From Trichosphaerium sp. ATCC 40318 (taxonomy: Eukaryota; Protista; Tubulinea), in contig JALMLS010000106.1 in assembly GCA_038496445.1 (NCBI GenBank), positions 1-37,255 on the forward strand: a stretch of DNA of 37,255 nt, in the 5' to 3' direction. Shown here one piece after another: positions 2,924-29,775 of the stretch. Positions within the stretch are counted from its first letter, which is position 1. Each line of letters starts with the position of its first letter. Position numbers and translations under genes: made by a program. The notes under the pieces were generated by a model, which saw only the letters and a program-made list of their open reading frames with translations, was not told the DNA's origin and did not search any database.

Positions 2924-5900
2924 TTATTTGAGTGTACTCTCATACTTAGCAATTCGAGAAAGAAGTTCAGCAATTTGAGTATCTTTTTCTTTCAATTTTG
3001 TGCATTGCTCTTTCAATTTTGCATCTTTTTCTTCTAGTTGAGCACCTTGTTCTTCCAGTTTGGTATCTTTTTCCTTGATCTTATTTGATAATACTTGCAC
3101 TTGTAAATCATGTGCGCTCAATTGTTTTGGCTTGTTCAAATTTGTAGCTCCCCATAATTGCCTGTACATGTATATAAGGAACAAAGTAAATGCTGTGATT
3201 ACGTGTACCTGTTTTTCAACAAGTTCTCTTTGTCATCTGACAACTCATCATCGCTATCTGAGTTTGTTTCAAGTTCGATTTTCTTGGCACTCTCATCATC
3301 GGCAACGCTCTTTGGTGTCTTGGTTGTTTTTTTGTTTTTTGGGTTACTCTTTTTTGATTTGGTTGTATTACGTTTCCTTAGTTGCTTTACAACTTTAATT
3401 ATGTATCGTGCTACAGCTTGAACATCTAAAATGGAATGTTAGTACTTTGTATTTTGTAATGCAAGTTACTACAATTGACTGTTTTTTGGAATACCTTGTG
3501 CCACAACCAACTCATCACACACTGCCTCATTCACTTTGGCATTTGAAACTGCAATTCCAAGTTTGTCTACCAATGCGTAGTGACTCTGGTATCCTGGTTT
3601 TATTGGTTTACCATAAAAGTTATCATCATCAGTAGGCTTTTCTGTAGCCTATTACTGTTGTAAACAAATAAAAAGCTGAGGTAATGTTGGTGTACAGGAT
3701 ATACATTTCCGGGAGTGACTAGACTTAAAACAAGAGTCAATTCTCGATTTCCTGATGTATCATATGAGCAAGCATATTCAAGGCTACTCTAAACAATACA
3801 GGTTAAGAATAAATTAAGAAACATGTCCATGTACAGTAAAGTAAACACCCTGACCATAATACCCGCCATCTAAAGAACTCACAGTACCAAATCCAGCTTT
3901 TACAATACTCAAAGCAGCTTCAGGAGATGTACCATGAACCATCAATAAAATGGGTGACTGAAAACATGTAAGATGATTTAGGGTGAATGTCATTACCTGT
4001 TCTAAAGTGTTTGTACTTGGGCTGTTGTCATTAATCAGAGCGTTAAACCTCACAGCCACTGCTCTCTTATGACTGTCTTGTTTCCATTCGTCTTTACAAA
4101 ATAACTTTGGAAGTTCTCTAAATAGTAGGGTAAGCTCTTGTTTATAAAGAACCTGTAAGTTGTATTGGCGTTGAGTCAAGAGTGAGCTCTGTTGAGTTAA
4201 TAGAAACTTGTTGTTAAACGTACTGATGTCTGTGTTTCACTATTGTATTGTACATCCCAAAGTTACAAGTCAAGACATCATTGCATACAAGAAGTGCTTC
4301 TACAACAGTGACTCTATCATATCCAGGCATTTTTGATAGTTGTTGATGAAGAAACTCAAGTTCTCTCTTGGCCACAGTGTTGTCATCAAACAGATTCAAC
4401 GTTCTATAATCTGTTGCTTTTTCAACAGCACCCCTTGCAATAAAAGTTAGACAAAACAATTGTGAAAGAACACTGACTTATGTTAGATCTATTCCAGTAG
4501 TGCGCATACTGTAATCTTGGATTTAAGTCCCAGAAGGTTTCACTTTTTAATCCTTGAGTTTCAGCGTGTTAGTGTGACACTATTGAAAGGTGAGCTGTAC
4601 CTGCAAGTGTGTTACCAAGTACAAGATTTACAGAAGTAGGATTAATACTGTGTTCACAACCCTGGCACTCACACGCAAGCTTAGCAAATGACCATTTTCT
4701 AAGTTTCTGGAAGAAAGTTAATAACCAACTCTAGCACATAAATTACATGGTTTGGGTTATGTTCACCGGCACAATACTGACATAAAGCGACTCCTCTTTT
4801 GTTACAGTCATAGCACAGCAAGACTAGATAGTAACTTAAAAGAATGCATTGTATAAATTATCCTACGATTTTGCTTGGCTATTTTAAGTGAGTTTGTACA
4901 CCATCCTTCTTTTTTACATATCTCAATGCAACTGGGGTGTTTTGGATTGATCCACATATCCTCAGGTAAGTCGAATAATAGTCCCTCCATTAATTCCCCG
5001 TGCTGAATCCAGAAACTCTTTTAAAAAAAAGCTGTTATTTGAAAGTCAGAGATGAAAGACTGCCGTACCGAAGATTGTACAACTATGCGATCATATGTAC
5101 ATATTAAATAACAAATCCCTTTTTGTAATGCAAGTTTAAAATAAGATCGTGTTGGCTGTTATGATTACAATTAGTTTTACAAACTCTTTGAAAATGAAAT
5201 GACATACCAAGTATTGCAACCATTTTGCAAGATTGAGTCTCCATTGTGGCCTTTCTTCCATTGTTGCACAAGATAGCCATAGAGTGCTAGATTGCTTGCC
5301 ATTTAGCATAACTGTCAACACAGTTTCAAATACAGCAATGAATGAGGAATCATTATCAACAACACCTATTACTATCCTATTAAATAGCATCTTATTGTGC
5401 CATATATTTGTAGATAGTGAAATGGCTTTACTCATTTTCAATAACCTAACAAGAACAGAATTATGCCCATAATATGCTAAGAAAGGTTACAACAATTGCA
5501 TAATTTTGACAAATGGGTACCTGAAAGGTGGAGAGCTGTCAATCCATTGTTATTCTTTACTTCAATATTTGCACTAGAGCCAAGTAATATTTCTACAACT
5601 TTAATGTGCCCATTACGTGCTAAGAAACACAAGTTACATCAAGTATATTAACAGTAAGGTACCTGCTAAGAAGAGAGCTGTCCCACCATTGTTATTTTTT
5701 GCTTCGATGTCTGCATTTGAACCAAGTAATATTTCAACAACTTTACTATGGCCATCACGTGCTAAGAAGTGAGTTACATCTATCATTTCTTGACAACAAA
5801 ATGGTACCGGCATGATGAAGAGGTGTCCACCCATATATACCCCTTGCTTCAATATTTACTCTTTGACCAAGTAATACTTCTACAACTTTACTGTGTCCAT

Positions 5901-6963
5901 TACGTGCTAAGAAACAAGTTAGATATAAGTTATTATATATATATTAACAGTAAGGTACCTGCAAAGAGAAGAGCTGTCCATCCTTTGTTATTTTTTGCTT
6001 CGATATCTGCATTTGAATCAAGTAATATTTTAACAACTTTACTATGGCCATCACGTGCTAAGAAGTGTGAGTTACATCTACCATTTCTTGACAACAGAGG
6101 TACCGGCATGATGTAGAGGTGTCCACCCATCTATACCCCTTGCTTCTATATCTGCGTTTGATTCAAGTAATATTTCAACAACTTTACTATGGCCATCACG
6201 TGCTAAGAAGTGTGGTTACAGCTATCCATTTCTTTACAACAAGTAAGTACCAGCGTGATGGAGAGCTGTCCATCCATTGTTATTTTTTACTTTAATATCT
6301 GCATTTGAACCAAGCAATATATCAACAACTTTAATGTGTCCTTGACGTGCTACGAATTACAAATTACAACATTTGTACACTAAATACACTCAAGTACCTG
6401 CACGATGGAGAGGTGTGTATCCATCATTGTCTTTTGCTTCAATATCTGCATTTGAACTAAGTAATATTTCAACAACTTTAATGTGTCCATTACATGCTAG
6501 AGGTACAAGTTACATCAAATGTACATTGACAACAAAAAGGGTATTGACAACGATATAGTAAGTCACCTGCAAGATGCATAGCTGTCCGTCCATCACTGTT
6601 TGTATATTCAAGGTTGGTACCCTTATGTATACACAGTGTTGTAATAATAGCCAGACCATGTTGGGCTAAAATACAGTTTTATATTGTATGAGCGTATTGT
6701 ACATACCTGAGTACAATAGAATTGTCTCATCAAACTTTTCGTTACATAATCTGCTGTTTAGGTCATTTACTACAGATTGTCACAAGATATTAAAAGCCAT
6801 GTTAAGAGTAAGCGCACGTGTTGTAATACTTTCGTATTGTCTGCGAAGTATCGCCAATTCGTCTACATTGGAACTGTTAAATGCACACGTGAAAATATCA
6901 TGTTTCTTGTTACTAACCTTCTAACGATAGCGTTTCTTCTGTATGTTGTTTTTGTTCAGACAT
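2924..6963 (-). CDS. Ankyrin-repeat / UBR-box-like zinc finger / PARP-type ADP-ribosyltransferase protein, copy A (8 ankyrin exons)
   Basis: ATG at 6963 (MSEQKQHTEETLSLE). Eight 99-nt ankyrin exons at 5521-6665. Cys/His cluster CYDCNKRGVALCQYCAGEHNPNH...CECQGC. PARP motifs LLMVHGT, GYYGQGVYFT-SSLEYA and DELVVAQ. C-terminal heptads end at 2924. The spliced frame is open in all exons I translated. Confidence 0.9.
5521..6665 (-). repeat. Array of 8 one-ankyrin-per-exon cassettes (copy A)
   Basis: Exons 6567-6665, 6398-6496, 6251-6349, 6104-6202, 5959-6057, 5808-5906, 5663-5761 and 5521-5619 are each 99 nt, bounded by tag|C... and ...G|gt. Confidence 0.93.
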
Positions 6964-7789
6964 CAAGCGGTGTAACGTGTGCTAGATATTAGATAAAATA
7001 CTTTTATGTTTGCATGATATTCATTGATTTGTTTTGGGTCTGGTACAACACGTTAACTAAATGTTCAGTGATAACCCACAGTAACTCTGAAGGTGCTGTT
7101 CACCTAGCGAGGATGAAAGAACAGGCCTAAGTTGAAATGTGTGTTACCCAGTGATATTGAGTACAAAATCACAACTTTCAAACAAACTATTCTATCCACA
7201 TTTATATGTAACATGTTTTTGAAGAATAGTGACAACAAGTTATCTGACACATAACGCGTACTTCACTGATTAGTGACATGTAAAAATAACAAGAATTTTT
7301 TTTGACCACGTGTTACAAAATAAATACTTATTTAGGTTGTAAATTTTTGTCCGGCAAACAACTGTTGACTCGCAATGTAGTTGACAACAAAGCCATTTTC
7401 ATTTTCTGCTTATAGCAGAAACTTACTACAATTCTCAGTATGCAAACCAAAGTAGCAGGTAGCGTAAAAGGTTAATGGGATGCGTAACAGTAGATTCAAC
7501 TGACAATAAAACGATGTTGATCAAAGACGTGTACCACTTACAGATTTAGTTGGCGCACAACGTTCAAAGCTCTGTGACAATATTCTAGGTACGAAATGTC
7601 ATACGAGTATTTTCGTCTTAATGCTCATTTATAGGCTAGAAATGCTCAAAGCAAAGTGAATCTTACTCAAATAGTATCATTCATATTAGTTTGCCTTAAG
7701 GTTTCCTTAATTTTCCAAGGAGGATTGTGATAGAAAAGTCTAAAGACGACAGTTTTTGTTCAACATTTTATGTGACTATCTTTTTCGCA

Positions 7790-10177: not shown

Positions 10178-10449
10178 TTGATACTACTTTTTCTGAATAA
10201 GACTTGAAAGTAAACGACTGTTTTTAGGACGAATTACAAGTACTAAAGATAACGGTGAACTAACTGATACGCATATATGTATTAGCCCTTCTTAAGAACT
10301 CTCAAAAAGGAACATGGATGCATCAAATGAATGAGTTACTGAGGACATAAATATCAGAAACAACTTTTTTTGTACAATTTTTTTCTTTTTATTACTTGAC
10401 TTTACACCGCATGATTGTTCCTTCCTTTTTACTGTATCGTCAAATCAAC

Positions 10450-12813
10450 CTATACTGCAGCATATCCACCTCCTTCTGTTAGCTTACGCCTCTTAGATTT
10501 TGGAAAATATTCCTTAGCAGCAGCAGCATTAACAGCAGAACGTAAATGACCAGATAAAGTAACATTAAACTCTTCAGACTCAAGCATTTCGCCATAATTC
10601 TGCAGTATCCACCAAATACACCTTCCCTTTAATAGTTTAGAATGTAGCTTATCTGCACTCTCAAGCATAGTACAAACAGTATCCTTATCAATATTTTCAA
10701 GCATGAAAGCTTCACATAGATACTTAAGACGTTGTAAATCAAATCGATCAGCTGCAACAAAAAGCTCCAATACAGTATCTCCAGTAAGTTTAACAGTTCC
10801 TGTATATATAAATTCAAGCATCTTAGATAATACAGCAAATCTAATATCAGGAATACAAATTTCACTTTGTCCTTGTTCCTTCATACCTAATAACAAATCA
10901 AAAAATCAAAGGAAAAAAAACTCCAAAAAAAAAACATTCGGGAAGGGTTTACAACCCCAAAAACGAGTCTACTTCACCCACATAAATACAATGTCATATT
11001 GGAATACACTATGACGTATTTACGATACAAATAAACTTGTTTTTCAGGTGTGAATTTCAAGACAGATAAAAATTTTTGGATTAAAAACTTGTAAAGAAGA
11101 TGAGATCCGTACCTCCTGATAACATTGCTTTAAAGTATGTAGAACGTATGGAAAGTATACCACGATACACAAAAATCTTCTCATCGGAGTCGCTAGCCTT
11201 AAGGACTAAATCGGAGCACATTTCATTATTAAACATTCCCTTCATATCACTTTGTAAAGTAGAAGCATTTTGTGCAACACTTGTTCCTGGGGCGCGTATC
11301 CACAGAGCATTTTTAAGCGTTCCGGTGAAATCATTCTTAGTTATATCTTCAATATCAACACCAAATCCATTCTTCATTGGCCACCATCTAAACAGACCAT
11401 GTTAGAATAGTAAACGAAAAAAAAAAAAAAAATTCTTTTTGAGTCACTGCGCTCGAAGCCATTTTTTTTTTCACTGGAATAGTATTATTACAAATATTTA
11501 AACAATATTTGCGCCTAGTATACTATTGTTCACAAAGTCGATTTGTTCGAGAAGAAATCAAACAAAACAAAATTTACAATCCACTTTTCAACGCAAAGCC
11601 GAAGCCCCAGATTTCTTTACGGCCTCAGATTGGTACGTACCCAAGGAGACCTTCAGCATCTATAGGAGGCTTCTCATACATATATTTTTTAATATCTTCT
11701 TCTTTAAGGGCCCTATTCCATATACGAACATCGCTCATACTTGCACTCAAATACTCGCTTACTAGAAAAAAAAGATTCAGTACAATGGTTTTTTTTTCGA
11801 CTAGCTACTAATACAGAAAAACAAAAAACACTGATCCGAAATTCTTCAATAGAACATACTAGGGTCTCTAGGAGGATGTCGAGGAGGCTTCATTTCTACG
11901 AAGAAGGGTCGGACACAAGTTTAAAATATTACTCAGGCACACTAATGAGTGCTGTATTGGAAGAAAAAGGCTATTAAGACAAGATTTTTCTGAAACGAAA
12001 AAAAAAAAAAAGGAAACAAAAAAAAATTCAAAAATCATTTCAAACTTATTCAAATCCTTCGCTTTTGTGCTCTCTACCTCCGCAAAAATACGTCGGTACG
12101 TAAATAATTATTGTAGTGCGATTTTAGAGACAAGAAACCGAGAATTTGAAAAAAGCTTGAAATGATTTTTTTGATTTTTTTTTTTTTTGTTTTCGTTTCA
12201 GATCAGATGCAACTCTTATTGATGGCTGTACCCAGGTGTAAACCAAAGTGAAGGTCATTCTTCGTGCAATCAATAGGACCATGCATACTCGAAATAGATT
12301 TAACGCGTACGCCGTTAAGATAGAAGGAAAGGTTACTCTTGCTCTGGCTGTAAGTACAAGCGATATGCGCCCATCTCTAATAAAAAAACCGTTTATTAGC
12401 AACCCTACTGGTCCAAATTAGGTTTAAACGTTCTTACCTCAATTGGCACGCATTGTCTTGAGTTCTTCCATACCCAGCCAGGTCGTATGTTCTTCACAGC
12501 AACCAAAATGGCTGTTTTTTTGATTGCGAGTGCGAAACTCGACTTTTTTACGATCAAATACCCTGTACATAGTTTATGCATGTAAACCCATGTCTCTAGG
12601 GTCAATTCGCTCGAAACCGTCAAGTCGTCTGTATGCGGCACAACTACTTTGTCTTCTTTGTTACTAAAATCCAACGAGAAAACATTAGACAAGCCTAAAA
12701 GTCAACTGTTACAAACGCGCCAAAATCATTACTTTTTCACCAAACGTACTGCAACGTTTTGCATGTGTTCCAGCGATATCAAATTCGTCCCCAGAGTCGC
12801 CTGGCTGTTCCAT
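10450..12813 (-). CDS. LamG/ConA-like domain + BTB/POZ + BACK protein (putative CUL3 substrate adaptor)
   Basis: LamG motifs LTLETWVY, RWAHIACTY...FYLNG and SDVRIWNRALKEEDI. BTB motifs MFNNEMCSDLVL...ILSIRSTYFKAMLSG-GMKE...MLEFIYTG and LFVAADRFDLQRLKYLCE. C-terminal basic NLS-like PKSKRRKL. Probable ATG at 12813. Confidence 0.88.
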
Positions 12814-13037
12814 TATCTAGTTTTTTTGGTGTTTTCCGCCAATAGAGCTTCTGCTGCTATAAAATCGAGTACCAACGATGTTGTGCAACGTTTGGTACAA
12901 GAATCTCGTTTTGTAGAGTGGTTTAAGCCAAGATTGTGAAAAAATGTTCTTTGGGAGAAAAACTCGCAAAAGAAAAAATTGTGCCACCTACAGAAAAGTT
13001 GAACGAAACTTTGCTTTTGTTTCAGATCATCCAAAAC

Positions 13038-14924
13038 ATGAAGCTTCTCTTCCTACTTGCTACCATCGTCGTTGTAGCCTTGTGCGCCGTCGACCGCACT
13101 GGGGCACCTACATACAACCGTATGGATAACCATAAACTCGTTTCTGTGAGTATCTCTACCCAAGCCCAAATTGATGCTTTACAAAAACTTGAGGAACAAC
13201 GCCTTGTACGTACTCACACATCGCGCGTTTTGCGTTACGACCGTGGAAGATAATTTAGGCCACTCTAAGCTTTTTTTAATTAAATCACGTGGTTGTCATG
13301 TGACTTTATACGCACCGTTTCGCGTACACGCATTGAGAGTGTTAACTTTGGTTTTTTTTCTAAGGTTGATATTTGGTCCCACAGCTCCGCCATTACTTTT
13401 GGAAAAAATGAACTACACGTTGCTCCAGAAAACATGAAGTTTATTGAGTATCTTGGCGTAGGATATGATATTCTTCATGAGAATATCCAGGAGCTATTCG
13501 ACGAGGAACTTTCTTCGTACAAATACGGCAAGTAATGAACAAACTTTTTTTTTGATTGCCTCCCCATCTTATTGTATTATCTAGTGCCTTTCAATGCTTC
13601 TGCAGATGATTGGTTCACAGCATATCACAGATTTACCGAAACTTTGAACAGGTTCGAACTTTCCGTGTGCTCTTTTGGACTTGAACTAACTTTTTATGTT
13701 TTTCAACAGAAACCGAGGACTTGCCGGCAATTACGGACCAGCCTCATTGTCTTTCAATCTTCTTGGTAAAACCTACGAAGGTAGAGATTTGTTTGCCATG
13801 AAATTGAGCTCAGGTGGTAGCGGAAAGACAACTTTCTTCAACACAGTACATTTCCACTTTTTTCTTTCAAACCTGCTAAAGAATTTCTTTAGGCTGGTAT
13901 TCACGCACGTGAGTGGATTAGTCCGCAAACTCTTCAGTACATTATGGAGACTTTCGTAAGTACACCTTTAAGATTATTCAAAGAGAGCTAAATTACTTTA
14001 AGATCGAAAAATTGGAACAAGGTTCCGCAAGAGAACTCGCTCTTATAAATGTGCGTCGTCGGAGTTTTTATTCCTCCTATCTAACATTCCTTGTCAGAAA
14101 ATGGACTTCACCTTTATGCCTATGAGCAACCCAGATGGCTATGAATACTCTTGGACTAACACACGTCTTTGGAGAAAGAGCAGAGCTCCTACATCAAACC
14201 CATCTTGCCCTGGCACTGACCTGAACAGAAACTTTGGTACCTTTTTCCTTTCAACAACTTTTTTTTCTTATGTTTTTTTTCAGATTCCCACTGGGGTGAA
14301 GGTGGTAGTTCAACAAACCCTTGCTCTGATACGTACCGCGGTGGTCGTGTTGAATCCGAACTCGAGACACAAATTATCTCCAAGTACTTCAAGGACAATG
14401 TACGCTGAAACTAACTAGTGTTGTAGTATGTTTAGTTTAATTTTTGTTTAGCAACCTACTGGTTTTGGTATTGATTGGCATGCGTATTCTCAATTGATTC
14501 TTCGCCCATGGGGATGGGTACATACAACAAAAGAATAGACTCTACAACGTGGAACTAACATTCTGAAATAGACTAACACACTCCCTCCATGTAACACTAA
14601 GTGCCAAGCTACCGGCGAAAAAATGAGAAATGCTATTCGCGCTGTTGATGGAAAAGCATACACAAACCAACGCTCTATCCAATTATACCTTACAACTGGA
14701 ACTGCAAGTGATTTCTACTATGATTCTAGCACCCTACCAGCTACTGAGAGCCAAGGATTTACAATTGAGTTGAGACCTGCAAGTGCCTTCCCAGGTACGA
14801 ATTTTTATTTTTTTTTGATTATGGTGACCTCTTGTCTTTAGGTTTCCAATTACCTGCTTCTGAAATCCTAAAGACTGGTGAAGAGAACTACGCTGGTTTC
14901 TTGGAAGCAGCTGAGAGCGTATAA
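13038..14924 (+). CDS. Secreted zinc metallocarboxypeptidase (M14A, carboxypeptidase A/B-like) with propeptide
   Basis: Signal peptide [17 protein letters not shown]. Spliced motifs [23 protein letters not shown]...LWRKSR, DLNRNF, DWHAYSQ and FTIELRP. Stop at 14922-14924. Confidence 0.95.
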
Positions 14925-16075
14925 TATGTTTGCAGCAAGCAGAACCAATAAATTGACTTTTTAGCCTGTCTTCTTTATTTTTGATTTTACTGCCGTATTC
15001 ATAATACAACTCACATGTGACACTACTCGTTGCATGCGTAAGAATTTGAGCTCGTTGGTTCTAGGATTTGAGCCATTTCAAATCAAATCCTGGAGAGTGT
15101 TTTTTCCCTGACATTAAATATTTTACTACGTTGGGGATAGCTAAGTTTATTGACTAGATCCTTTTATGTGAAGATCCGCCATGGTGACGGTTTTCATGAT
15201 ATTTGGTGTGTCTTGTTCCATAAAAATACAAAATTGATGCATAAAAGTTTGCAACACAATACTACGAAACATCTGTAATGTTAAAACAACCTACTTCTAC
15301 TTTAAGTACCAGTTTGTTGGACTACTAACGTGGATTCTACCAACAATTCTAACAGCTGACCTCCATCATCTGTGATCCCAACTGCCAACCAGACAACCAT
15401 AGGATGGTATGGTAAACTGAAATTTACGTCAGAATTACAACATTTTGTTCTTTGACGTAAAAAAAATCATTAGAGTTCTGATACTAACTACTACTCTTCT
15501 ATCAACTAACCAAAGGGACTCAACTTAGACGATGTTTGGTAGGAAGACAAAATGTCTTGTGGCTCTAGCGCAGCGCCAAGCATTTGTTATCTATTATACA
15601 AGAAACACTTGGAAAATAAAAGAAAGTTTTACAGGTTTTTAAACAAATTGAAAAGGAAATTTTTGGGTGGGATGTGGGTGATTGCCGCTCGCCATGTTCT
15701 TGTACACGTTGTGGGCGTTTGTAGTTGATTTATGAGTCATACCAAGTCTTACCCAAACGTCTGTAACGGAGAAAACACGTGTACAGCCATTGTAAAAAAA
15801 ATAGTCTGGAAAATCTGCTTCTTGTTTTTTTGATGTTATATATTCGCCTTAACAACTTTGAAGGCGGTTTTCGTGCAGCGGATTGGGAGAAAAAATCCAC
15901 TGTGTATACTCTTAGTTCAAGGTCTTCTGACTGTAACAATAGAAACTACTATGTTGTCATGAAAGTGACTTGAAGGGACATTAAGCTAACTTTTTTTCGG
16001 TCTGGACACGTGTACTATTAGTATTTCACGCTATCCTCCAAAACTAACCCAAAAGCGCCCGATAAGGAATATACT

Positions 16076-17699
16076 ATGCATAGGCGCTGTAAAATCAATA
16101 TGGCTTTATTGTTAGCGGTTTACGTCACTGTACATTACTTGATATTAACGCGATACGATACACACCGCGTGGAGACGCCCGGGATTATCGCTAGTAATTA
16201 TATTAGGCCAACTGAAAGCAAGGGATTCTGTGATATGTTTCCTAGAGGCTACAGAGTTAATTATACAGCTCTAACGGCAAAGGAGCAACTGGAAAGGACG
16301 TTGATCATTTTTAAGAACTACGAGAAAGCACATGACTTGAAACTATCTCGTAAGTGTTCTTTGTGGTTGAAACCACTTGTTGATAGCGCTAAAAAGAAAT
16401 GGATGCTTTATGTTGGCGCAAATGAAAATTTAGCCTTCTTGACACGTGACGAAGAGAGAATTGCAGCGATAGATAAGATTGCCGACTTTACTTTTGGCCG
16501 TCGATCTAATTACAGCATGATCAATCATGAGTGTGTCAAACCAAGTCTTACGCTTAATATCAGTAAAGAAAATAGGTTCATAAACACGTTCATAGCTGTT
16601 GGTGGTAGAACAGAGTGCGCAGAAGCCTTAAAAAAAAGTTGTTTTTACCTGACGGATTGTTTTTTTAGGAATTTAAAGTTCACGCTACAGTCACTCCATG
16701 AAGCGGTTGTTTTTTCTAACATGTCGTCGGAAATACATGTAACTGTGTTAGAATTTGGTATTAAAACAACTGAGGATCTTGTTATGTCAGGTGAGTGGAG
16801 TTTCAAAACAAGTTATATTCATGTACCGAATTGGGTTTCTACACTTTGGGGTTGCAGTACATATTTCCCTACAAGCCTTGCTCATAATCTTGGATTTCTA
16901 CTTACGCAAGAAGCTGAATGGAATATGTTCTTAGTATCGGATTTCGCAATACCAAGAGAGTTCTTTGATATCGCTAGGCTCAGAGACCAGGAACATGATT
17001 TTTTTAATCCTTACAATAGCACGTTTCAGTTTTGAACTTGACAGTTGTAAACTAATGTGTATTTTCCAGGAGCTGTGTTTCTGGGAGAAAAGAAAGCTAA
17101 GAAGTTTCATGAGAACTGGAAAAAGAAAGGATATATTGCTAGGTATACTATTAAAAGAGGAAGACAGTTTAAAAATCCAACAGGTTAATTTTTTCTTCTA
17201 AATACTCACTACGCATTACCCACAGCTAAAAGTGGCTATTTGTAGGAGGTATAATCTTTGTGAAATCTAAGGCTTTTAAAGCTGTTGGTGGGTACGACCC
17301 AGAGATGTTTTGTGGTTGGGCACCAGAAGACCATACGTTTCTATACAAGCTAGCACGTTACTATGAAATGTTACCTAAAAAAACACCTCGGGAGAAGCAA
17401 AGTATGTCAGTTAATTTTTTCAGTTAATCACGTGTTAATAGAAAGTGACTTTTGGGTTTTAGTATAAAGAGTATATTCTAATGATTTCTGTCTTAGGAAT
17501 TGTTCACTTGCCTCATAACAATACAGAAGGCAAATTTTTTTATATCGCTTTTGGTGTATTTATTTCTGAACAAATGATCAACTTAACAACACTTCAAGTT
17601 CATAACTACTTGGATTACAAGCGGAAATTGCTGACATTAGATGATTTACCTGATAGAAATCATACTTACGTTCGGACAAAGTCTGGTGTATGTATGTAA
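16076..17699 (+). CDS. Type II membrane glycosyltransferase (GT-A fold, Glyco_transf_7C-like C-terminus)
   Basis: N-terminal signal-anchor MALLLAVYVTVHYLIL. SLAHNLG...MFLVSDFAIP region. Downstream exon GGIIFVKSKAFKAVGGYDPEMFCGWAPED matches the GGxDxxFxGWGxED motif. Confidence 0.75.
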
Positions 17700-18708
17700 A
17701 ATAAAAAAACCAGAAAAACGTGATTCAAAAGGTAAAAATTTGTTAGTAGAAAGTTGCTTCTTGTTTTTTTCTTTTGTTTTCCAATGGACTAAGCATTGTA
17801 ACAACGGGTAAACTTGTAATCTTGATGAATGAAGCAAGTGGGGACCCGCATTTTATCATGTAACAGTTGCATAATGTAGTTGACGGTTGAAATAGCCACC
17901 TCATTAATTTCAAGCAAGCTCAAGGTAAACGTTTGTTTCACTAATTAATAGCGTTTGTATCACTTTAAAGATAGTAAAACCGTGCAATAAAGTGCAAAAT
18001 TTGAAAAAAATTTTAAAATGTCTTGTTTCAATTCAATCAATCACAGGAGGCGGCAAACGGGTTTGTTTTGCTTGGTGTTATATGTGTTTAAAGCTTGAAC
18101 ATGTTTGTGGAGCTACTATAATTCTGTTCTCAGTGCTTCTCACTTTTATGTATTGGCGTTTGTCCTTTCAATGTAAGCTAGCTTGAAGGGCAGTTTTTGA
18201 GGTATCATTTGTTCTTAGAGTGATTTATGACGTATAACGGTGCATGCGTTTCGTCATCTCATGGAGCCATTTAGAGCCTAAATGCAGTTTTTCTCACTAC
18301 TACATCATAAAGGCAGTCTTGAGTGCGTTTAACAGTGCCAATTTTTATAACTTATTTTTTTATTGTTGATACTGAATACCGTAGCACTCACTTTATTCGA
18401 GTATTACTTACAAGATAATATTACATCGGGGAAAAAAATAACCCTTACCAGCTTGCTCAATCAAGCTCCGACATTTCCCACAAATTTTGGAGGGCCACGT
18501 ACCAGTGTTGTAAGAGATAATCAAATGAAAACCATAAATAAAAAGATAAAAGCAACAGACTAAATAGTGAAACGGAAGTACTGTACTAGCATGTAGTTTG
18601 TTTGAACCGGTTCCTTTAAAGAAACGGCTTGTGCTTTGTGTACAATGAATCACGTGAAAAAATTACCTTATTTTATCTGATATATACCGCGTGCTACAAC
18701 ACCACTTG

Positions 18709-21700
18709 ATGTCTGAAGAAAACAGTACTGAAGCAGCTTTGACCTTAGAAGGTAGGCAACAAGAAACGTGATATTTTCACGAGCTGTATTTAACAGTTCA
18801 TGTAGGCGAATTGGCAATTCTTCACAGACGATACAAGAGTATTAAAACAGGTCCGCTTTCTCTTACCATGGTTTTTTATGTTGTTAAGATAATCTGTAGT
18901 AAAGGACCTAAATAGCATATTGTTTAACAAACAGTCAGTTGACAAAATTCTATTACATGCAGGTATATTCGACATTAACAAATTTATACCTAAACACAAA
19001 CAAATGTAAACTGGATTTTAGCACAGCATGGTCTGGCTATTATTACAACAATGTGTATACATAAGGGTGCGAACCTTGAATATACAAACAGCTATGGCTG
19101 GACAGCTCTCTATTTTACAGGTAACGTAGTCAGTGGACACTTTTTTTAACTTGTATCTCTAGCGCGTTATGGACACAGCAAAGTTTCTCAAATCTTACTT
19201 AGTTCAAACGCAGATATCGAAGCAAAAGATAAGAATGGATGTACAGCTCTCCATCGTGCAGGTACCTTAGTTTCAATTTACAATTGCGTTTACTATACCT
19301 TTAGCACGTCATGGACACAGTAAAGTTGTTGAACTATTGCTTCATTCAAATGCAGATATCGAAGCAAAAGATAAGTATGGATGGACAGCTCTCCATCGTG
19401 CAGGTGTGAGGTTTTACTCAATTGCAATTTGTACTTCTAGATATGATAGATGTAACTCACACTTCCTAGCACGTGAAGGGTATAGCAAAGTTGTTAAAAT
19501 ACTACTTGGTTCCAAAGCAGATATAGAAGCAACAGATAACAATGGATATACAACTCTCCATCATGCAGGTACCGTGTTGTTGTCGTTACACGTTTGTTGA
19601 AACTGTAACTCTAGCACGTCATGGATATAGTACAGTTATTGAAATACTACTTGGATTAAGTACAAATATTGAAGCAAAAGATAATTATGGCTACACAGTT
19701 CTCAATCGTGCAGGTACATTGTTGTAAAAGTATAATTGCTATAACGGCTCTAGCTCGTCATGGGCACAGTACAGTTGTTGAATTATTACTTGAATCAAAT
19801 GCAGATATAGAAGCAAAAGATAATAATGGGTATACAGCTCTCCTTAGTGCAGGTCCTTTACTGTGTTCAGTACATACTTGTTGTAACTTATACTTCTAGC
19901 GCGTCATGGGCACTGTGCGGTAGTTGAAATATTACTTCGGGCAAATGCAGATATTGAAGCGAAAGATAAAGACGGATTTACAGCTCTCTGTCGTGCAGGT
20001 ACCATAGTTGTAAAATTGCTTTAACTGTATGTCTAGCACACAATGGACATAGTCAAGTTGTTGAATTACTGCTTGGTTCAAACGCAGATATTGAAATAAA
20101 GTCTACCAATGGATGGACAGTTCTCCATCATGCAGGTACTTACTTGTTGTCATTATACAGTTGTAACTTGTACCAATAGCGCGTCAAGGACACAATAAAG
20201 TTGTTAAAGTACTACTTGGAGCAAGTGCAGATATTGAAACAACAGACAAAGATGGATGGACAGCTCTACATTGTGCAGGTACTTAGTCGTTGTCATTGCA
20301 CCTTCATAACTTTTCTTAGCATACTGTGGCCATAATTCTGTTCTTGTTACTTTACTGAAAATGAGTAAAGCCGTATCACTATCTACTGATACATGGCAAC
20401 AGATATTTAATAAGATACTAATGGGTGTCGTTGACAACGATTCCTCATTTATTTCTGTGTTTGAAACTGTGTTGAGCTTATTCCCAAATGGTAAGCAATC
20501 ACGAAAACTATGGCTATCTTGTGATTCAATGGACAAAAGGCCACAATGGAGACTCAATCTTGCAAAATGGCTGCAATACTTAGTACATACATACCCTTTT
20601 CAAAGAATTTACATTGTATGCTAATTGTTATCACAACAGCCAACACGATCTTATTTTAAACTTGCATTACAAAAAGGGATTTGTTATTTAATCTGTACAT
20701 ATGATCGCATAGTTGTACAATCTTCGGTACGACCACTATATCTTCATTCTGTGATATTCAACAAATAACATAGTTGTTTTTTCAGAGTTTTTGGATTGAG
20801 TATGGAGAAGTAATGGAAGGCATACTATTCGACTTACCTGAAGATATGTGGATCAATCCAAAACAAACCAGCTGCATTAAGATATGTAAAAAAGAAGGAT
20901 GGTGTACAAACTCACTTACAATATCCAAACAAGATGGTACGTTATAATATTAACAATGCAATTTCTTTTAACTTGCTAATCAAGTTTGGGTGTGCTATGT
21001 GTGTAATGGATTGTATTTGTGCGAGTATTGCGCTAGGAAACATATCTCTAATCATGTACTTTTTGTACTAGTGTTGGTTATTAACATGTTGTATAGAAAC
21101 TAACAAAACTGTCAAATACTATTTATGTGTGTCAGTGCAAAGATTGTAAACATGCCATTAATCCTACCTCTGTAAATCTTGTACTAGGCAACACATCTGC
21201 GGGTACTTACAAGTGATGGCAAAACACTAACACACTCAAAGGATTGAAAAGTGAAACCTTGTGGGACTTAAATCCAAGATTACAGAATGCTCACTACTGG
21301 GATAGGTCTTACAATAAGTCAGTATTCTTTCACAATTATTTGTCTAACTTTTATTATAAGGGGCATCGACGAAAAAGCAACGTTGAATCTGTTTGATGAC
21401 AACACTGTCGCCAAGAGAGAACTTGAGTTTCTTCATCAACAACTGTCAAAAATGCCTGGATACAATCGAGTCACTGTTGTAGAAGCACTTCTTGTATGCA
21501 ATGATGTTTTGACTCATAACTTTGGAATGTACAATACAATAGTGAAACACAGACATCAGTACGTTTATCAACAAATTTATATTAACTCAACAATAACAGC
21601 TACGTTAAAATACTTCTTTCTACTTAACACCAATAGCTTACTACTCTATAGAGAACTTTCAAAGTTATTTTGTAAAGACGAATGGCAGCAAGACAGTCAT

Positions 21701-22476
21701 AAGAGAGCTGTAGCTGCAAGGTTTGAAGCTTTGATCAATGATAACAGCCCAAGTACAAACACTTTAGAACAGGTAATGACACTCACCATAAAACATTGTG
21801 CAATAAATCTTCTCACACGTTTTCAGTCACCAGTTTTATTGATGGTTCATGGTACATCTCCTGAAGCCGCTTTGAGTATTGTAAAAGCTGGATTTGGTAC
21901 TGTGAGTTCTTTAGATGGCGGGTATTATGGTCAAGGCATCTACTTTACTGTATGCGATACTCATATCTCTGTTGTTAACTTATCCTATATTTTAGAGTAG
22001 CCTTGAATATGCTTGCTCATATGATACATCAGGCCAAGGAGAAACAACACTCGTTTTGAGTCTGGTCACTCCTGGAAATATTTTTCCTGTACGCCAACAC
22101 CAACATACCTTATCTTTGTATTTTTTACAACAGCAAGGTTACAGAAAAGCCTACTGATAATTTTAACTATTATGGTAAACCAATAAAACCAGGATACCAG
22201 AGTCATTACACACTTGTAGACAAGAAAGGAATTGCAGTTGCCGAAGACAAAGTCAATAAGGCAGTGCATGACGAGTTGGTTGTGGCACAAGGTATTACAA
22301 AAAAGTTGAGTACAATACAAAGTACTAACATTCTCATGTTAGATGCCCAAGCTGTACCACGATACATAATTAAAGTTGTAAAACAACCAAGGAAACGTAA
22401 TTCAACCAAATCAAAAAAGAGTAAACCAAACAAAAAAACAACCAATACAAAAAACGTTGCCGATGATGAGTGCTAA
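18709..22476 (+). CDS. Ankyrin / UBR-box-like zinc finger / PARP-type ADP-ribosyltransferase, copy B (9 ankyrin exons; C-terminal tail truncated by frameshift)
   Basis: ATG at 18709 ([14 protein letters not shown]). Nine 99-nt ankyrin exons at 19022-20278. Zinc finger [21 protein letters not shown]...CQCKDC. PARP motifs [33 protein letters not shown] and DELVVAQ. Stop at 22474-22476; a vestigial coiled-coil exon runs to 22818. Confidence 0.88.
19022..20278 (+). repeat. Array of 9 one-ankyrin-per-exon cassettes (copy B)
   Basis: Exons 19022-19120, 19163-19261, 19305-19403, 19470-19568, 19615-19713, 19754-19852, 19900-19998, 20037-20135 and 20180-20278 are each 99 nt and phase 1-1. Confidence 0.93.
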
Positions 22477-23296
22477 GAAAATCGAACTTGACATATACTT
22501 AGATAATGATGAGTTGTCAGACAACTTGTTCAAAAACAGGTACACGTGACCATAGCATTTTACTTTGTTCCTTACTTACATATGCAGGCAATTATGGGGA
22601 GCTACAAATTTGAACAAGCCAAAACAATTGAGCGCACATTACAAGTACAAGTATTATTAAATAAAATCAAGGAAAAAGATGCAAAACTGGAAGACCAATG
22701 TTTCAAACTGAAAGAGCAAGGAGCTAAATTGGAAGAAAAAGATGCCCAAATTGCTGAACTTCTTGCTCGGCTTGCCAAGCTTGAGAGTAAAAGTAGCTTC
22801 ACTATTAATAAAAAGTAATGTGCTCACCAAACAATGTTCTAGCATGTATCACTATGCTCTCAAACCTTTTTGTTATACGAATTTGTACCAGCGCTATCTA
22901 GTAGTAACAACGTCAAGTGACATAATTTGATTGACTCAAATGTTAGTTTTCAGTCACTTAAATCACGTGTCTGCAAATCACCTTTTTACCAAGCTCTTTA
23001 TCATGTATATGAAGGTATCTCGTACTCCGAGACTATCATCAGTATTGATAATCAGGCAAGCAGTTGATACATAGTTAGCCTCAAAGTGTTTTCTCTTTGC
23101 CACATTAATTCGGTTGAGCTGTTTTCGTGTAATTGCTATTAAGTCACATAAACGTGAGTCAGTCAAGATCTACAACGTTACAAGTCGTGTCTTTCTTATT
23201 GTTAGCTTTACTACGTTTGGTTGAACGGTAAAACAGTACGTCTTGTTTATTATTTAACTTTAACGCCATAATTAGTTTACCACAGCTTCCGTGACA

Positions 23297-24901
23297 ATGT
23301 CTACGCAGGGCGATACGATAAATACAATAAACAGCCTTAAAGGCGACAAAATAACGCCATTATTGCTACCGCCGGAGATACAGCAATATATCAGTATTTT
23401 AGATGAAACCGCGTTCGTTAATTGGTATATTGCAGAGCTAGAGCGCTTTTTTTTTTACTAAACTTTTTCACTGAAAAACACGTTTATAACGATAGTTTCG
23501 CTAATTGACTACCTCTCTAGGCACTTGCTCTGTAAGGATGCAGCGTTATCTACACACTTTAATACATCTATGGAGAAGCATGGGAACTGGTATAAATGGT
23601 GTGAAGAAGGGTTTCGATACAAACAATGTACTTTTGTTGATGGTAAAAAAAACGGACTTAAACGTTATTGGAGTCCTGAAACGCATAAACTTAACAAAGA
23701 ATACATGTGTCAACATGATAAAAAGAATGGTCTTTATAGAGAGTGGAAAAACGGTGTTCTGTTTAAGAGGTATAATTATGTAGATGGTGAGAAAGACAGA
23801 TTCTGTGAACGCTGGTTTGCCGAAACAACAACTTTGGATAAAACTGTGTACTACGCAAAAGGAATCAAAAATGGAGAGTTTAAATCATGGTATAACAATG
23901 GTCAGTTATTAACACAATGTAATTACAAGGGAGGGGAAGTTGAAGGGCTATTGAGTGAGTGGTGGAGGGGAGGACAATTGAAGAAGAAATGTTCTTACGC
24001 TGACAACCAGTTACATGGGATGTTTGAGACTTGGTATGCAAGCGGTCTCCCAGAGACTAAATATAACGTAAAGGATGGTAAAACACATGGTTTACACAAG
24101 AGTTGGTTTTCGGATGGTACATTATCTATCGAGTACACAATGGAGGAAGGAGTGAAACAAGGACTACATCGAGAATGGTATAAATGTGGTCAACTTGAGG
24201 TTCAATGTACTCTCAAGGATGGTAAGAGAAATGGAGAGTATACCCGATGGCATAGAAATGGTAGAGTATGGGCAAAGGCTATTTACAGTGAAGGAGGAGT
24301 AGAAGGAGAGTATAAGAAGTGGTTCGAAAACGGTCAACTTAAAGTGAAGTGTAGTTACATAAATGGGAAAAAAGAAGGAAAGTACCAACAATGGCATGAT
24401 AATGGTAACATCGATGTTGAGTGTTTTATGAAGAATAACCTCAAGGAAGGTATGTATTATCAATGGCATGAAGATGGTACTACAAAGCATAGTCAAGTAG
24501 ATCATAAGTTAGGACTTGAGGAAGGCGCTTATATTAACTGGTATCCGAATGGTAAAATGAAGAGTAAGAATCATTATATCAAAGGTGTTAAGAATGGTTC
24601 TTGTACTTCTTGGTATCATAATGGTATAATGAAGATTTCTTGTACTATTATTAATGGTAAGAAGGAAGGCGTTTACAAGGCTTGGTTTGAGAATGGTAAG
24701 ATGAGGTTGAAGTGTAATTTTGTTGATGGAAAAAAAGACTCTGTTTCTGAAAGTTGGTTTAATGATGGTCAATTGTCTGTTAGGTGTCATTATAAGGAAG
24801 GTCAAAAAGAAGGATTATACGAATCATGGAGCCCTAAAGGAGTTCTAGTAGCCAAGCGTGGTTATAAAGAAGGTATTAAACAGCATGAGTACGATGTATA
24901 G
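23297..24901 (+). CDS. F-box-like N-terminus + MORN-variant (MORN_2/YwqK-like) repeat protein
   Basis: Exon 1 (23297-23424) splices in frame across intron 23425-23520 to a 1381-nt exon, giving LLLPPEIQQYISILDETAFVNW-HLLCKD (F-box-like). This is followed by about 17-18 repeats of ~24 aa with consensus GKKEGxYxxWxxNGxLxxxCxYxx. Confidence 0.88.
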
Positions 24902-25069
24902 ACATTGTAAGAGATGTATTCCGATATTGGGCTAGAGTGCTTCTCTTTGGGAAGTTCTTTAACAAATTAAGTGAAAGATTGTTAATTAAACAAGCTCTCT
25001 AATACGACTTTATTGTGAGTACACTACTCTTTGTTTACATTCAGCAGTAGTACTATGTTGATAGCGAAG

Positions 25070-28000
25070 CTACTGTTTACTCTCAAGGCTGGTAATTCGA
25101 GCACGAAGCTCAGCAATTTGTTTATCTTTTTCCTCCAGTTTAGCACTTTGCTCCTTCATCTGATGTGTTAAGACTGTCAAGTGCATATCATTTGCACTCG
25201 GTTGTTTTGACGCGGCCGTAGTTGTAGCTCCCCATAATTGTCTGTACATGTAAGTAAGGAACAAAGTAAAATGCTATGATCACGTGCACCTGTTTTTGAA
25301 AAAGTTCTCTTCATCGTCTGACAACTCATCATCTGAGTCTATATCACGTTTACTTTGTTTTACGCTTTCATCATCGGTGGCAACGTTCTTTGATGTTTTG
25401 GTAAGTTTTTTGATTTTTGGTGTACTCCCCTTTGATTTGGTTGTTTTACGTTTGTGCTTTACAACTTTTATTATGTATCGTGCTACAGCTTGAACATCTA
25501 ACATGATAACATTAGTACTTTCTACTCAACTTTTTTGGAATACCTTGTGCCACAACCAACTCATCACGCATTGCCTTATTCACTTTGTCTTCGGCAACAA
25601 CAATACCTTTCTTGTCTACAAGTGTGTAGTGACTCTGGTATCCTGGTTTTATTGGTTTACCATTAAAGTTAAAAGTATCATTAGGCTTTTCTGTAACCTA
25701 TTACTGCCAGTAAATAAATAAAATAGCAAAGTCGTTGGTGTACAGGATATACATTTCCTGGTGTGACTAGACTTAAAACAAGAGTTTTTCCTTTGCCTGA
25801 CGTATCATATGAGCAAGCATATTCAAGGCTACTCTACACAATACAGGTTAAGAATAAATTAAGAAACATGAGTTTCATGTACAGTAAAGTAGATGCCTTG
25901 ACCATAATACCCGCCATCTAAAGAACTCACAGTACCAAATCCAGCTTTTACAATACTCAAAGCAGCTTCAGGAGATGTACCATGAACCATCAATAAAACT
26001 GGTGACTGAAAACGTGTAAGATGATTTAGGTTGAATATTATTACCTGTTCTAAAGTGGAGCTGTTGTCGTTGACCAGAGCTTCAAACCTCGCAGCTACAG
26101 CTCTCTTATGACTGTCTTGCTTCCATTCGTCTTTACAAAATAACTTTGGAAGTTCTCTAAATAGTAGTGTAAGCTCTTGTTTATAAAGAACCTGTAAGTT
26201 GTCTTGGCGTTGAGTCAAAAGAGTAAGCTCTGTTGCAATATTATTTGTTGTTAAACGTACTGATGTCTGTGTTTCACTATTGTATTGTACATCCCAAAGT
26301 TATGAGTCAAGACATCATTGCATACAATAAGTGCTTCTACAACAATAATTTGATCATATCCAGGCATTTTTGATAGCTGTTGGTGAAGAAACTCAAGTTC
26401 TCTCTTGGCCACAGTGTTGTCATCGAACAGGTTTAAGGTTCTATAATCTGTTGCTTTTTCAACAGCACCCCTTTGCAATAAAAGTTAGACGAACAATTGT
26501 GAAAGAACACTGACTTGATGTTAGATCTATCCCAGTGATGAGCATACTGTAATCTTGGATTTAAGTCCCAGAAGGTTTCACTTGTTAATCCTTGAGTTTC
26601 AGAGAGTTAGTCACTGTCAAAATGTAAGCACATACCTTCAGACGTGTTACCAAGTACAAGATTTGCTGAAGTAGGATTAATACCATGTTTACAATCTTGG
26701 CACCGACACATATAGGAAATTTCCGTCTGTTGTACTAATTTCTACAAACTTGTTAATAAATATCACTTACACAGAAATTACATGGTTGGGGTTGTGTTCA
26801 CTAACACAACTTTGGCATAACGGCATTCCATTTTTTGTGTCACATTCGTAGCACAAAAACGCTAGATTCAGACTTAGAAAGTGATTGTATTAATACTACC
26901 ATACTTGGCGAGGGTATTATTGTTTTTAGTGAGTTTGTACACCATCCTTCTTTTTTGCATATCTCAGCACAGCTGTCAATGGAGCTGTACGGATTTTTAT
27001 CACTGTGTATGTATTCAGGTAGGTCAAATAGTATGCCTTCCATTAATTCTCCGTGCTCAATCCAAAAACTCTTTAAAAACAACTCGTTATTTGAATGTCA
27101 CAGAATGAAGATAGTCGTACTGAAGATTGTACAACTATGCGATCATATGTACAAATTAAATAACAAATCCCTTTTTGTAATGCAAGTTTAAAATAAGATC
27201 GTGTTGGCTGTTGTAATAACAATCAGTTTACAAGCTCTGTGAAAAAGGAAGGGCATACCAAGTATTGTAACCATTTTGCAAGGTTGAGTCTCCATTTTGG
27301 CCTTTCGTTCACTGTTGCGCAAGCTAACCATAGTGTGCTTGATTGCTTACCATTTGGGAATACTGTCAATACAGTTTCAAATACAGAAATGAACGAGGAA
27401 TCGTTGGCAACGACACCCAATAGTATCTTTTTAAATATTGTTTGTTGCCATAAATTTGTATCCAGTGAAATGGCTTTACTCACTTTCAGTAAAGTAACAA
27501 CAACAGAATTATAGCCAAAGTACGCTAAAGATTGTTACAACAATTATTTAATGACAAAATAACAGTAACAACATTAACGTACCTGCAAGATGGAGAGCTG
27601 TCCATCCATACTTATCTTTTGCTTCGACATCTGCATTTGATCCAAGTAATATTTTAACAACTTTACTGTGTCCATTACGAGCTAGCAAGTGATTTGTGTC
27701 AATTGTGGACTGACAACAATAAAGATACCTGCAAGATGGAGAGCTGTCCATTCATCGTTGTTTTTTCCTTCAGTATCTGCGTTTGAACCAAGCAAAATTT
27801 GAACAACTTTACTGTGTCCATAGCGTGCTAGAGGTATAAGTTACATCACATTTTGTACAATAGGTACCTGCAAGATGGAGGGCAGCAAATCCATTGGTAG
27901 CCTTTGCTTCAATATCTGCGCTTGAACCAAGTAATACTTCGACACTCTTACTGTCTCCAAAGCGCGCTAAAAAGCGTGAGTTACAGTAACTATATATTGA

Positions 28001-28839
28001 TACCTACATACCTGCAATGTGGAGAGCTGTATAACCAATACTAGACTTTGCTTCAATATCTGCTTGTGAACCAAGCAGTATTTCAATGACATCACTGTGT
28101 TTATTACAAGCTAAAAGTGTGATTACCGCAACGGTATTAACAACAATACGGTACCTGCAAGGTGAAGGGCTGTATATCCATCGTTGTCTTTTGCTTCTAT
28201 ATCTGCGTTCGAACCAAGTAATATTTCAATCACTTTACTATGTCCATCACGTGCTAAAAGCGAGAAGTTACATCAATTGTACACTTACAATACGGTACCT
28301 GCGTAATGGAGAGATGTATATCCAATATTATCCTTTGCTTCAATATCTGCTCTTGAACGAAGTAGTATTTCAACAACTTTAATGTGTCCACCACGAGCTA
28401 AAGTGATTTAAACAATTGTACAATTGTAAAACCTCATACCTGCACAATGGAGAGGTGTCCGTCCTCCTTTATCCGTATATTCAAGGTTTGCTCCCATACG
28501 TATGCACATTGTTGCGATATTAGTGAGACTGTGCTGTGCTAAAATGTAGTTTTGATATTGTGAATGAGCGTATTGTACATACCTGAGTACAATAGAATTG
28601 TCTCATCAAACTTTTCGTTACATAATCTGCTGTTTAGCTCCTTTACTACAGATTGTCACAAGATATTAAAAGCCATGTTAAGAGTAAGCGCACGTGTTGT
28701 AATACTTTCGTATTGTCTGCGAAGTATCGCCAATTCGTCTACATTGGAACTGTTAAATGCACACGTGAAAATATCATGTTTCTTGTTACTAACCTTCTAA
28801 CGTTAACGCTTCTTCTGTACTTTGTTTTTGTTCAGACAT
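25070..28839 (-). CDS. Ankyrin / UBR-box-like zinc finger / PARP-type ADP-ribosyltransferase, copy C (7 ankyrin exons)
   Basis: ATG at 28839 (MSEQKQSTEEALTLE). Seven 99-nt ankyrin exons at 27583-28538. Zinc finger CYECDTKNGMPLCQSCVSEHNPNH...CRCQDC. PARP motifs HGT, GIYFT and DELVVAQ. A short coiled coil ends at 25070. Confidence 0.9.
27583..28538 (-). repeat. Array of 7 one-ankyrin-per-exon cassettes (copy C)
   Basis: Exons 28440-28538, 28299-28397, 28155-28253, 28012-28110, 27868-27966, 27729-27827 and 27583-27681 are each 99 nt. Confidence 0.93.
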
Positions 28840-29775
28840 CAAGCGGTGTTGTAACGCACGTTGGATATTAGATAACTGCGAGTATGCTGATTGTGTCGCG
28901 ACATACTTCTGTTCACATTCCATAGGTTGTTGGAGAATAGCACAAAAAGTCAAGCTCTGTTTGTGTTATGTACGTTTAGAGTATTAGAAATACTTAGACA
29001 AACACCACAAATATTTTAATCGTTCAACAAAGCAATTTATCAGTGGTAACAAAAGATACAAGAACAGCTCTGTACTAAGTTATTTTCTTGTCAAAAAGGG
29101 TGTGTACAAATAAACTCGGACTAACTATTTTGTATTTGTCCAAGAAAGTTACAAGAACAGGCAAAAATAAACACTATGGTTTGCACTACATTTCGCGAAA
29201 TAGATTAGAGCCACGATTGACTAAAAAAATGTGCTGTTTTATGTAAAAATGTAGTATTGTATGTTTCATTCAAGTTTTACTAATATTTTCTAGAAAGTGA
29301 GTTTTTAGCACTTTTAGCAGATCTAACAAGATCTGACACTTCTGTCAAATGGTGTAGATCTATCACAATGTGAACTATTTGTGTTACAATGTTGTCCTTC
29401 ATTGTATGACTTAGGTACCTTACGGTAAGTGATAGCAAAATTTTCAATGTAAGTTTCAACATACCATTGAAGATGATCGCAGTATTTTACCTACGCCAAC
29501 TGTACACGGTACGATCAAACCACAGAGGTGTTCAATGCGCTAAAAGCGAATTAAAAAGGTATGATGTCCTACAAAGCTATCGCATTACCACCAAACACGA
29601 TATGAATGCCTCAAAACACTGTTTGCTGTATGTTTTGCTTCAAAAAATCAACGTACGTGTATAACTTACTAGCGCTACGCTAGCGCCTACCCCACGCTAA
29701 CAGAAGCGCTATGGTAGCATCCAAGCAGCAATGAAGGTGCTTGGTCAAAAGATGGAATATTTTTAAACTCAAACG

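Follow-up and report, generated by a model that had tools for sequence, protein, structure and literature searches.

The window analysed here is a 37,255-nucleotide (nt) stretch of the Trichosphaerium sp. ATCC 40318 genome assembly (contig JALMLS010000106.1), intron-rich eukaryotic DNA with a GC content of about 36%. It carries three genes, copies A, B and C, each joining an array of ankyrin repeats to a cysteine- and histidine-rich (Cys/His) module and a PARP-type ADP-ribosyltransferase (ART) domain. The three genes are real and are locally duplicated members of one marine-amoeba family. Judging from sequence and a structural model, we consider it likely that they encode amoebozoan (Trichosphaerium-type) ankyrin-targeted PARP-type ADP-ribosyltransferases acting in a tankyrase-like mode. 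The analysis shows how the genes are built and how their domains are ordered, that a homologue 57% identical to copy C models as a PARP ART fold, and that the residues of the NAD+ site (H-G, S-x-x-Y, Y and E) are conserved; from these we infer the mechanism.

Three duplicated genes and the state of each copy

Gene models were built by hand from three-way alignments and then checked by script.

2924..6963, minus strand: copy A gene, 24 exons, ATG at 6963, stop at 2924-2926, 956 amino acids (aa) given an alternative donor
18709..22476, plus strand: copy B gene, ATG at 18709, stop at 22474-22476, an 872-aa open reading frame (ORF) ending in ADDEC and the stop
25070..28839, minus strand: copy C gene, 23 exons, 898 aa, ATG at 28839, stop at 25070-25072

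The span proposed in the initial annotation, 2924-28839, runs exactly from the stop of copy A to the start of copy C. Compared by blastn on their coding strands with introns counted, the copies are mutually 75-79% identical over 3.4-3.7 kb. The introns in all models are GT-AG only and 38-93 nt long. Exon identity among the copies was 84-87% as compared to 57-71% for introns, which supports the exon map independently and beyond chance. The module order is shared by A, B and C: an N-terminal cap, ankyrin repeats, a linker, the Cys/His module, the PARP-like domain, a basic/acidic tail and a leucine zipper, with the tail broken in B. The cap is encoded by three small exons in all three copies. A scan for AG-99 nt-GT exons identified phase-1 ankyrin exons with a length of exactly 99 nt, eight in A, nine in B and seven in C, matching the repeat counts first proposed.

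5521..6665, minus strand: copy A ankyrin array, 8 exons of 99 nt, with Pfam Ank matches on the equivalent B exons
19022-20278, plus strand: copy B ankyrin array, 9 exons
27583-28538, minus strand: copy C ankyrin array, 7 exons

The array is followed by a linker exon of 263-269 nt that opens as a half-repeat (AY.GHNSV) and then by an exon of 87 nt. Directly upstream of the HGT motif of the catalytic domain lies an in-frame stretch, GTAAT..TTTTCAG, of 39 nt in A and C and 54 nt in B. This stretch is probably one additional intron, as three transcript-derived homologues lack these residues and B has a 15-nt insertion there.

Expression of the subfamily is demonstrated by P0161, a protein predicted from a transcript of Trichosphaerium sp. 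ATCC 40318 (MMETSP0405, taxid 498012). P0161 is 78% identical to copy C overall and nearly identical over the PARP half, appears to be a mosaic of A-like and C-like stretches, and is identical to none of the three copies. It spans the predicted junctions YFT|SS, YP|VTE, AQ|D and NR|QLW without gaps, confirming these four.

Copy C is the only unambiguously intact copy, with canonical splice signals throughout. The other two have lesions.

4474..4478, minus strand: copy A weak point, where 1 nt present in B and C is deleted at the conserved GTCAGT donor
22467..22640, plus strand: copy B tail lesions seen in the three-way alignment and translation, with 2 nt missing after 22467 and 4 nt after 22639

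When copy A is spliced at the GTCAGT donor the frame breaks and a stop is reached 12 codons into the following exon. Splicing at a predicted GTGTTC donor at 4473, 4 nt downstream, regains the full 956-aa ORF. The open frame of A appears to depend on this putative alternative donor and we regard the copy as borderline. In copy B the reading frame is lost for the acidic stretch and for what is left of the zipper (to about 22815); the predicted protein keeps the ankyrins, the finger and the catalytic domain and loses the acidic stretch and zipper, both of which are kept in more distant homologues. The earlier description of three paralogues sharing one module order is borne out by the spliced models of C and, given its alternative donor, of A, but the ORF of B closes ahead of the acidic stretch and the coiled coil.

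These lesions could mean that most or all of A, B and C are non-functional relics of an expanded family. The two tail frameshifts in B point in this direction, as do the donor deletion in A, which leaves a protein without the PARP domain if the other donor is not used, and an exact-match scan of metagenome contigs that returned neither the spliced exon 13/14 junction nor the 87-nt exon. However, C is fully intact, the copies hold open frames of 870-950 codons with ratios of nonsynonymous to synonymous substitution (dN/dS) of 0.2-0.5, exons are far better conserved than introns, and single-base indels may be assembly errors. That most or all of the copies are relics is very improbable in our estimate.

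Catalytic domain, Cys/His module and tail

Sequence comparison and modelling identify the C-terminal region as a PARP-type ART domain that keeps the H-Y-E triad.

3495..4433, minus strand: copy A PARP-type domain, exons 4224-4433, 3997-4117, 3835-3957, 3696-3788 and 3495-3648
3928-3936, 3835-3843 and 3502-3516, minus strand: copy A motifs HGT, YFT and DELVV, respectively
21361-22291, plus strand: copy B PARP domain, with HGT at 21848-21856, YFT closing exon 21827-21949, and DELVV at 22270-22284
25544-26470, minus strand: copy C PARP domain, with HGT at 25976-25984, YFT at 25883-25891 and DELVV at 25551-25565

The H (HGT), Y (GxGxYFT) and E (DELVV) are found in A, B and C alike, as the initial annotation had stated. 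An S-x-x-Y motif (SLEY) occurs as well. In a profile of 45 relatives (A1) the T of HGT (T153), the GxYGxGxY block (Y182) and the E of DELV (E257) are invariant. Profile alignment paired the LVV(A/F)Q strand with FVIFQ of ZAP, placing the Glu of DELVV at the third triad position, which we take to be equivalent to PARP1 E988 and PARP10 I987. The further claim of catalytic integrity in all three copies holds as far as H-Y-E is concerned, but A hangs on the unverified donor and B is truncated C-terminally.

Spliced copy C aligned by blastp to dozens of PARP-family relatives at E values of 1e-30 to 1e-40, in single alignments spanning predicted junctions. The closest homologues exceeded the 26.7-bit cutoff of Pfam PARP (PF00644), with 36.5 bits for P0001, 30.9 for P0002, 33.2 for P0003 and 45.5 for P0004, and a precomputed match exists for P0161. 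Searched against PDB, profile A1 matched the catalytic domains of ZAP/PARP13 (3e-9), PARP12, PARP10, PARP4 and PARP1/2. AlphaFold2 modelling of residues 138-417 of P0002, which is 57% identical to copy C, gave a mean pLDDT of 86.2 and a pTM of 0.84. Foldseek matched this model at a probability of 1.00 with PARP12 at the top, tankyrase 1/2 and the PARP1 ART (E 7e-11), along with PARP3 and PARP4. An ART fold was thus recovered for the C-terminal domain of the homologue P0002, in line with the original prediction. Two sets of other Pfam matches were discarded. A weak UBA match (E 0.01-0.1) on the exon that precedes the catalytic core was rejected, as the residues concerned correspond in the alignment to the N-terminal beta-alpha element seen in PARP12/13-type domains, and Cpta_toxin, holin and similar matches on window exons were sub-threshold noise.

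Between the linker and the PARP domain lies the Cys/His module.

4601..4920, minus strand: copy A Cys/His module, the end of exon 4867-5017 plus exons 4747-4823 and 4601-4706
about 20880-21202, plus strand: copy B Cys/His module
26636 to about 26960, minus strand: copy C Cys/His module

In the model alignment ten Cys and three His are common to all three copies. They form an exon-end C-x3-C-x6-C followed by C-x2-C-x5-8-C-x2-C-x3-H-x3-H and C-x-C-x2-C-x-H on two small exons. This is the least conserved module, at 57-65% amino-acid identity, with the residues between the Cys and His diverging, a pattern typical of a zinc-binding module. It is absent from the closest public homologues, P0001 and P0002, and a regex search found it in 0 of the 160 relatives fetched by then, suggesting that it is probably a subgroup-specific zinc-binding insert. 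The module had been called a UBR-box-like finger, an assignment that the profile searches did not uphold: zf-UBR (PF02207) gave no Pfam match at E<=10 with single exons or with the joined 57-aa core, though HMMER filters may hide very weak matches. The only Pfam hints were sub-threshold, to the Trim66 B-box (E 9e-4 to 0.012) and zf-B_box (E 0.05), and single finger exons had no match among PDB sequences.

The tail follows the catalytic domain, and the 87-nt exon lies upstream, after the linker exon.

2924..3425, minus strand: copy A basic stretch, acidic stretch and leucine zipper, read from the model
25070-25497, minus strand: copy C tail and zipper
20640-20726 (B, plus strand), 5069-5155 (A, minus strand) and 27121-27207 (C, minus strand): 87-nt exon encoding 29 aa

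The last exon has Leu or Ile at each seventh position, for about seven heptads in A and four in C. The same tail is present in the homologues P0001, P0002, P0005 and P0161, at about 50% identity in other organisms. The 87-nt exon differs by only 1-2 nt among all copies, and the adjoining exons have synonymous divergence (dS) of 0.3-0.5. Very local gene conversion or RNA-level constraint could explain this near-identity. The exon is coding, since its peptide is conserved in the transcript-derived homologue P0002. A near-identical element of about 110 nt after the linker exon was considered as an intronic non-coding RNA and rejected, the element being this coding exon; nothing in the window reached the gathering score in Rfam.

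Variation, relatives and function

Nei-Gojobori dN/dS among the copies was 0.31-0.42 for the ankyrins, 0.34-0.47 for the finger, 0.18-0.35 for the catalytic domain and 0.23-0.35 for the linker, and no module had a value above 1. These ratios indicate that the PARP domain is under purifying selection. Repeat-to-repeat identity in the ankyrin arrays is 74-91%. The most variable positions of the ankyrin exon are 3, 32, 25, 27, 23 and 24, which by our own mapping onto the standard repeat register sit on the hairpin and first-helix (concave) face. The positions that vary here are those that vary in ankyrin repeats generally. Pooling the repeats matched by position, with repeat orthology uncertain, dN/dS was 0.78 at the variable surface sites (0.93 using all-site dS) and 0.26 at framework sites. 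This indicates a near-neutral surface, relaxed or mildly diversifying; positive selection is not demonstrated. Of the rapidly varying recognition modules proposed at the outset, the near-neutral surface positions agree with the description but the ankyrin modules as a whole do not.

The first three exons and introns of A and C are near-identical, with a dS of 0.03 (6700-6967 against 28580-28843, both minus strand), and B differs. The introns of A and C within the PARP region are 91-97% identical, with B again the outlier. These comparisons suggest that gene conversion has recently acted, patch by patch, between A and C, both on the minus strand. The copies are mosaics, in a cluster under birth-and-death evolution with gene conversion in which C is intact, A borderline and B truncated.

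An exhaustive search with the 91-aa HGT-YFT exon returned 188 representatives at E<=1e-3, three of them below 1e-10, among 1.84 billion. The family is lineage-restricted and multi-copy, and not the conserved low-copy housekeeping family that would have told against the initial annotation. The domain order recurs elsewhere. The transcript contig L001 (JGI 3300016894, Ga0186627_100633) encodes ankyrin repeats at 2-784, then a 10-N gap, then the P0002 protein at 805-2577. It is probably one Ank-PARP mRNA of another organism, split by the gap and without the Cys/His module; with ankyrins directly upstream of P0002, the order ankyrin, linker, PARP, tail and coil is repeated in that organism's mRNA. 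More distantly related proteins of the same PARP branch have other N-terminal domains: Ank with SH3, Roc-COR, LRR, FG-GAP (including Pyxidicula), CUB/EGF, TSP1/EGF (including Copromyxa) and DUF4116. As a separate observation, in P0071, P0104 and P0132, of metagenomic or transcriptomic origin, the PARP branch lies C-terminal to Roc-COR GTPase modules and LRRs, an arrangement that recalls ROCO/STAND signalling proteins. A scan of viral contigs detected three weak PARP-like loci, without usable ORFs.

In the tankyrase-like mode that we favour, the ankyrin solenoid, most variable on its concave face, would bind a protein partner and the PARP domain would move ADP-ribose from NAD+ onto the bound partner or onto itself. 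The C-terminal leucine zipper would dimerise or oligomerise the enzyme, the role of SAM in tankyrase. The basic stretch may be a nuclear-localisation or nucleic-acid-contacting element, and the zinc module may offer a second, faster-changing binding surface. Several points weigh against this reading. H-Y-E cannot tell poly- from mono-ADP-ribosylation; PARP3 and PARP4 have H-Y-E and are mono-transferases. Since the domain is divided among five exons, the raw window exons score no more than 20-21 bits on Pfam PARP and fall short of the cutoff. The modelled fold is that of the homologue P0002 and not that of a protein encoded in the window, A and B both have frame problems, and the metagenome scan described above was empty.

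The initial annotation had read these genes as an innate immune receptor family. In such a sensor-effector the ankyrins and finger would sense a pathogen or non-self and the PARP domain would then deplete NAD+ or ADP-ribosylate viral or host targets. Several features would fit this: a local multi-copy cluster with 7, 8 or 9 repeats, mosaic gene conversion together with pseudogene-like decay in B, the contrast between ankyrin surface and framework sites, and a PARP branch that other protists fuse to many domains, the pattern that a portable effector would show. Abundant giant-virus gene traffic has also been reported for the host genome (PMC10521059). Against a sensor stand the lack of dN/dS above 1 in any region, surface variation at the positions usual for ankyrin repeats, the lack of NACHT, NB-ARC or another switch domain, and repeats that, at the identities given above, are unlike the homogenised hypervariable arrays of fungal NLRs. 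The immune inference was drawn by analogy alone and remains conjecture, and we hold it to be rather unlikely. A more specific form would have the genes act as non-NLR amoebozoan immune receptors, in which frame-neutral one-exon ankyrin cassettes and the fast-changing zinc module sense viral or bacterial ligands and trigger the PARP effector, with a repertoire that would arise as repeats are gained and lost, through gene conversion and perhaps through the skipping of exons; this version appears decidedly improbable.

The genes could also encode a tankyrase-like housekeeping scaffold, with ankyrins recruiting endogenous partners in trafficking, the cytoskeleton or chromatin, the PARP domain regulating them, and the duplication incidental. 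Purifying selection on all modules would be expected of such a scaffold, and the conservation of tail and zipper in other organisms and the ordinary flanking genes (actin, BTB/BACK, M14 carboxypeptidase and ricin-B lectin) are in keeping with it. However, the family is rare and patchy, its domain partners are highly variable, copies are decaying within the cluster, and the Cys/His module has been gained or lost between close relatives, making a housekeeping role unlikely.

The remaining features of the window are as follows.

2-517, minus strand: actin-like gene
about 1500-2330, plus strand: ricin-B beta-trefoil lectin
10453-11401, minus strand: BTB/BACK gene
about 12400-14900, plus strand: M14 zinc carboxypeptidase
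23462-24898, plus strand: MORN-repeat gene (Pfam MORN_2, E 5e-35), contained in one long exon and flanked by copies B and C, which are convergent

The ORF-rich stretches 16022-17032, 30761-31651, 32854-33588 and 35819-36457 had no Pfam match. The Trichosphaerium draft genome is described as having 37.7% GC and a mean intron of 75 bp, values with which the GC content and short introns of the window agree, and its paper mentions neither PARP nor ankyrin (PMC10521059).

Comparison with known systems

Fusions of ankyrins to PARP domains are repeated independent inventions and have been noted in Naegleria, Monosiga and Dictyostelium (PMC2964712, PMC4245714). The documented types are the tankyrases (Ank-SAM-PARP), found in animals only, and clade 1A (Ank-WGR-PRD-PARP), found in Dictyostelium, C. 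elegans and oomycetes (PMC2964712, PMC4245714). The initial annotation had called the architecture unfamiliar. This is correct for the full combination, as we found no published description of a protein with ankyrins, a Cys/His module, an H-Y-E PARP domain and a leucine zipper, but not for the ankyrin-PARP pairing within it.

Tankyrase 1/2 (PARP5a/b, clade 4) resembles the genes described here in its N-terminal ankyrins, its C-terminal H-Y-E PARP ART domain and an oligomerisation element between or after them, and its catalytic domain is among the best structural matches to the P0002 model (TM by target 0.67-0.76). It differs in having SAM and five ankyrin clusters, where copies A, B and C have 7-9 repeats, a C-terminal leucine zipper, a helical linker and the Cys/His module. 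SAM had no Pfam match on the linker or finger exons or on the full P0002 homologue, confirming the distinction from tankyrase drawn at first. By sequence profile the catalytic domain is nearer PARP13/12/10 than tankyrase. Clade 1A proteins (Dictyostelium ADPRT3 and C. elegans PME-5) likewise carry ankyrins N-terminal to PARP, in Amoebozoa and other protists, and are cited in support of several independent origins of the fusion. Neither WGR nor PRD had a Pfam match in the exons or in P0002, and the AlphaFold2 model has no helical regulatory domain before the ART core.

The clade 3 mono-ARTs PARP12, PARP13 (ZAP) and PARP10 gave the best profile matches (E 3e-9 to 3e-6) and share a compact ART domain, its N-terminal beta-alpha element and the lack of a PRD. 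Unlike the genes described here, which have the Glu and an ankyrin array, they have an H-Y-I/L or degenerate triad and CCCH fingers, WWE or other N-termini. Fungal NLRs reportedly carry hypervariable ANK, TPR or WD repeats in homogenised arrays. The likeness to them lies in repeat variation concentrated on the binding face and in multi-copy recombining families. The difference lies in their NACHT or NB-ARC domain, where the present genes have a C-terminal enzymatic effector and repeats that are not homogenised. NACHT and NB-ARC had no Pfam match on any exon or homologue, and no Walker A was seen on reading the models, with no formal scan made. The genes lack what defines each of these groups, namely the SAM of tankyrases, the WGR/PRD of clade 1A and the switch domain of NLRs, and they do not match the UBR-box profile.

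Ankyrin-PARP proteins are known, and functional knowledge of them comes nearly all from animal tankyrases. The amoebozoan branch places a full H-Y-E site behind many binding domains (Ank, LRR, Roc-COR, FG-GAP and EGF/CUB), and in this window it does so in a recombining cluster with a cysteine-rich module. If the ankyrin face tracks changing ligands, these proteins would recognise and tag their targets with just two parts, in a simple system that does not follow the NLR paradigm. Even if they are only regulatory enzymes, they would represent a compact natural counterpart of tankyrase in which a zipper replaces SAM.

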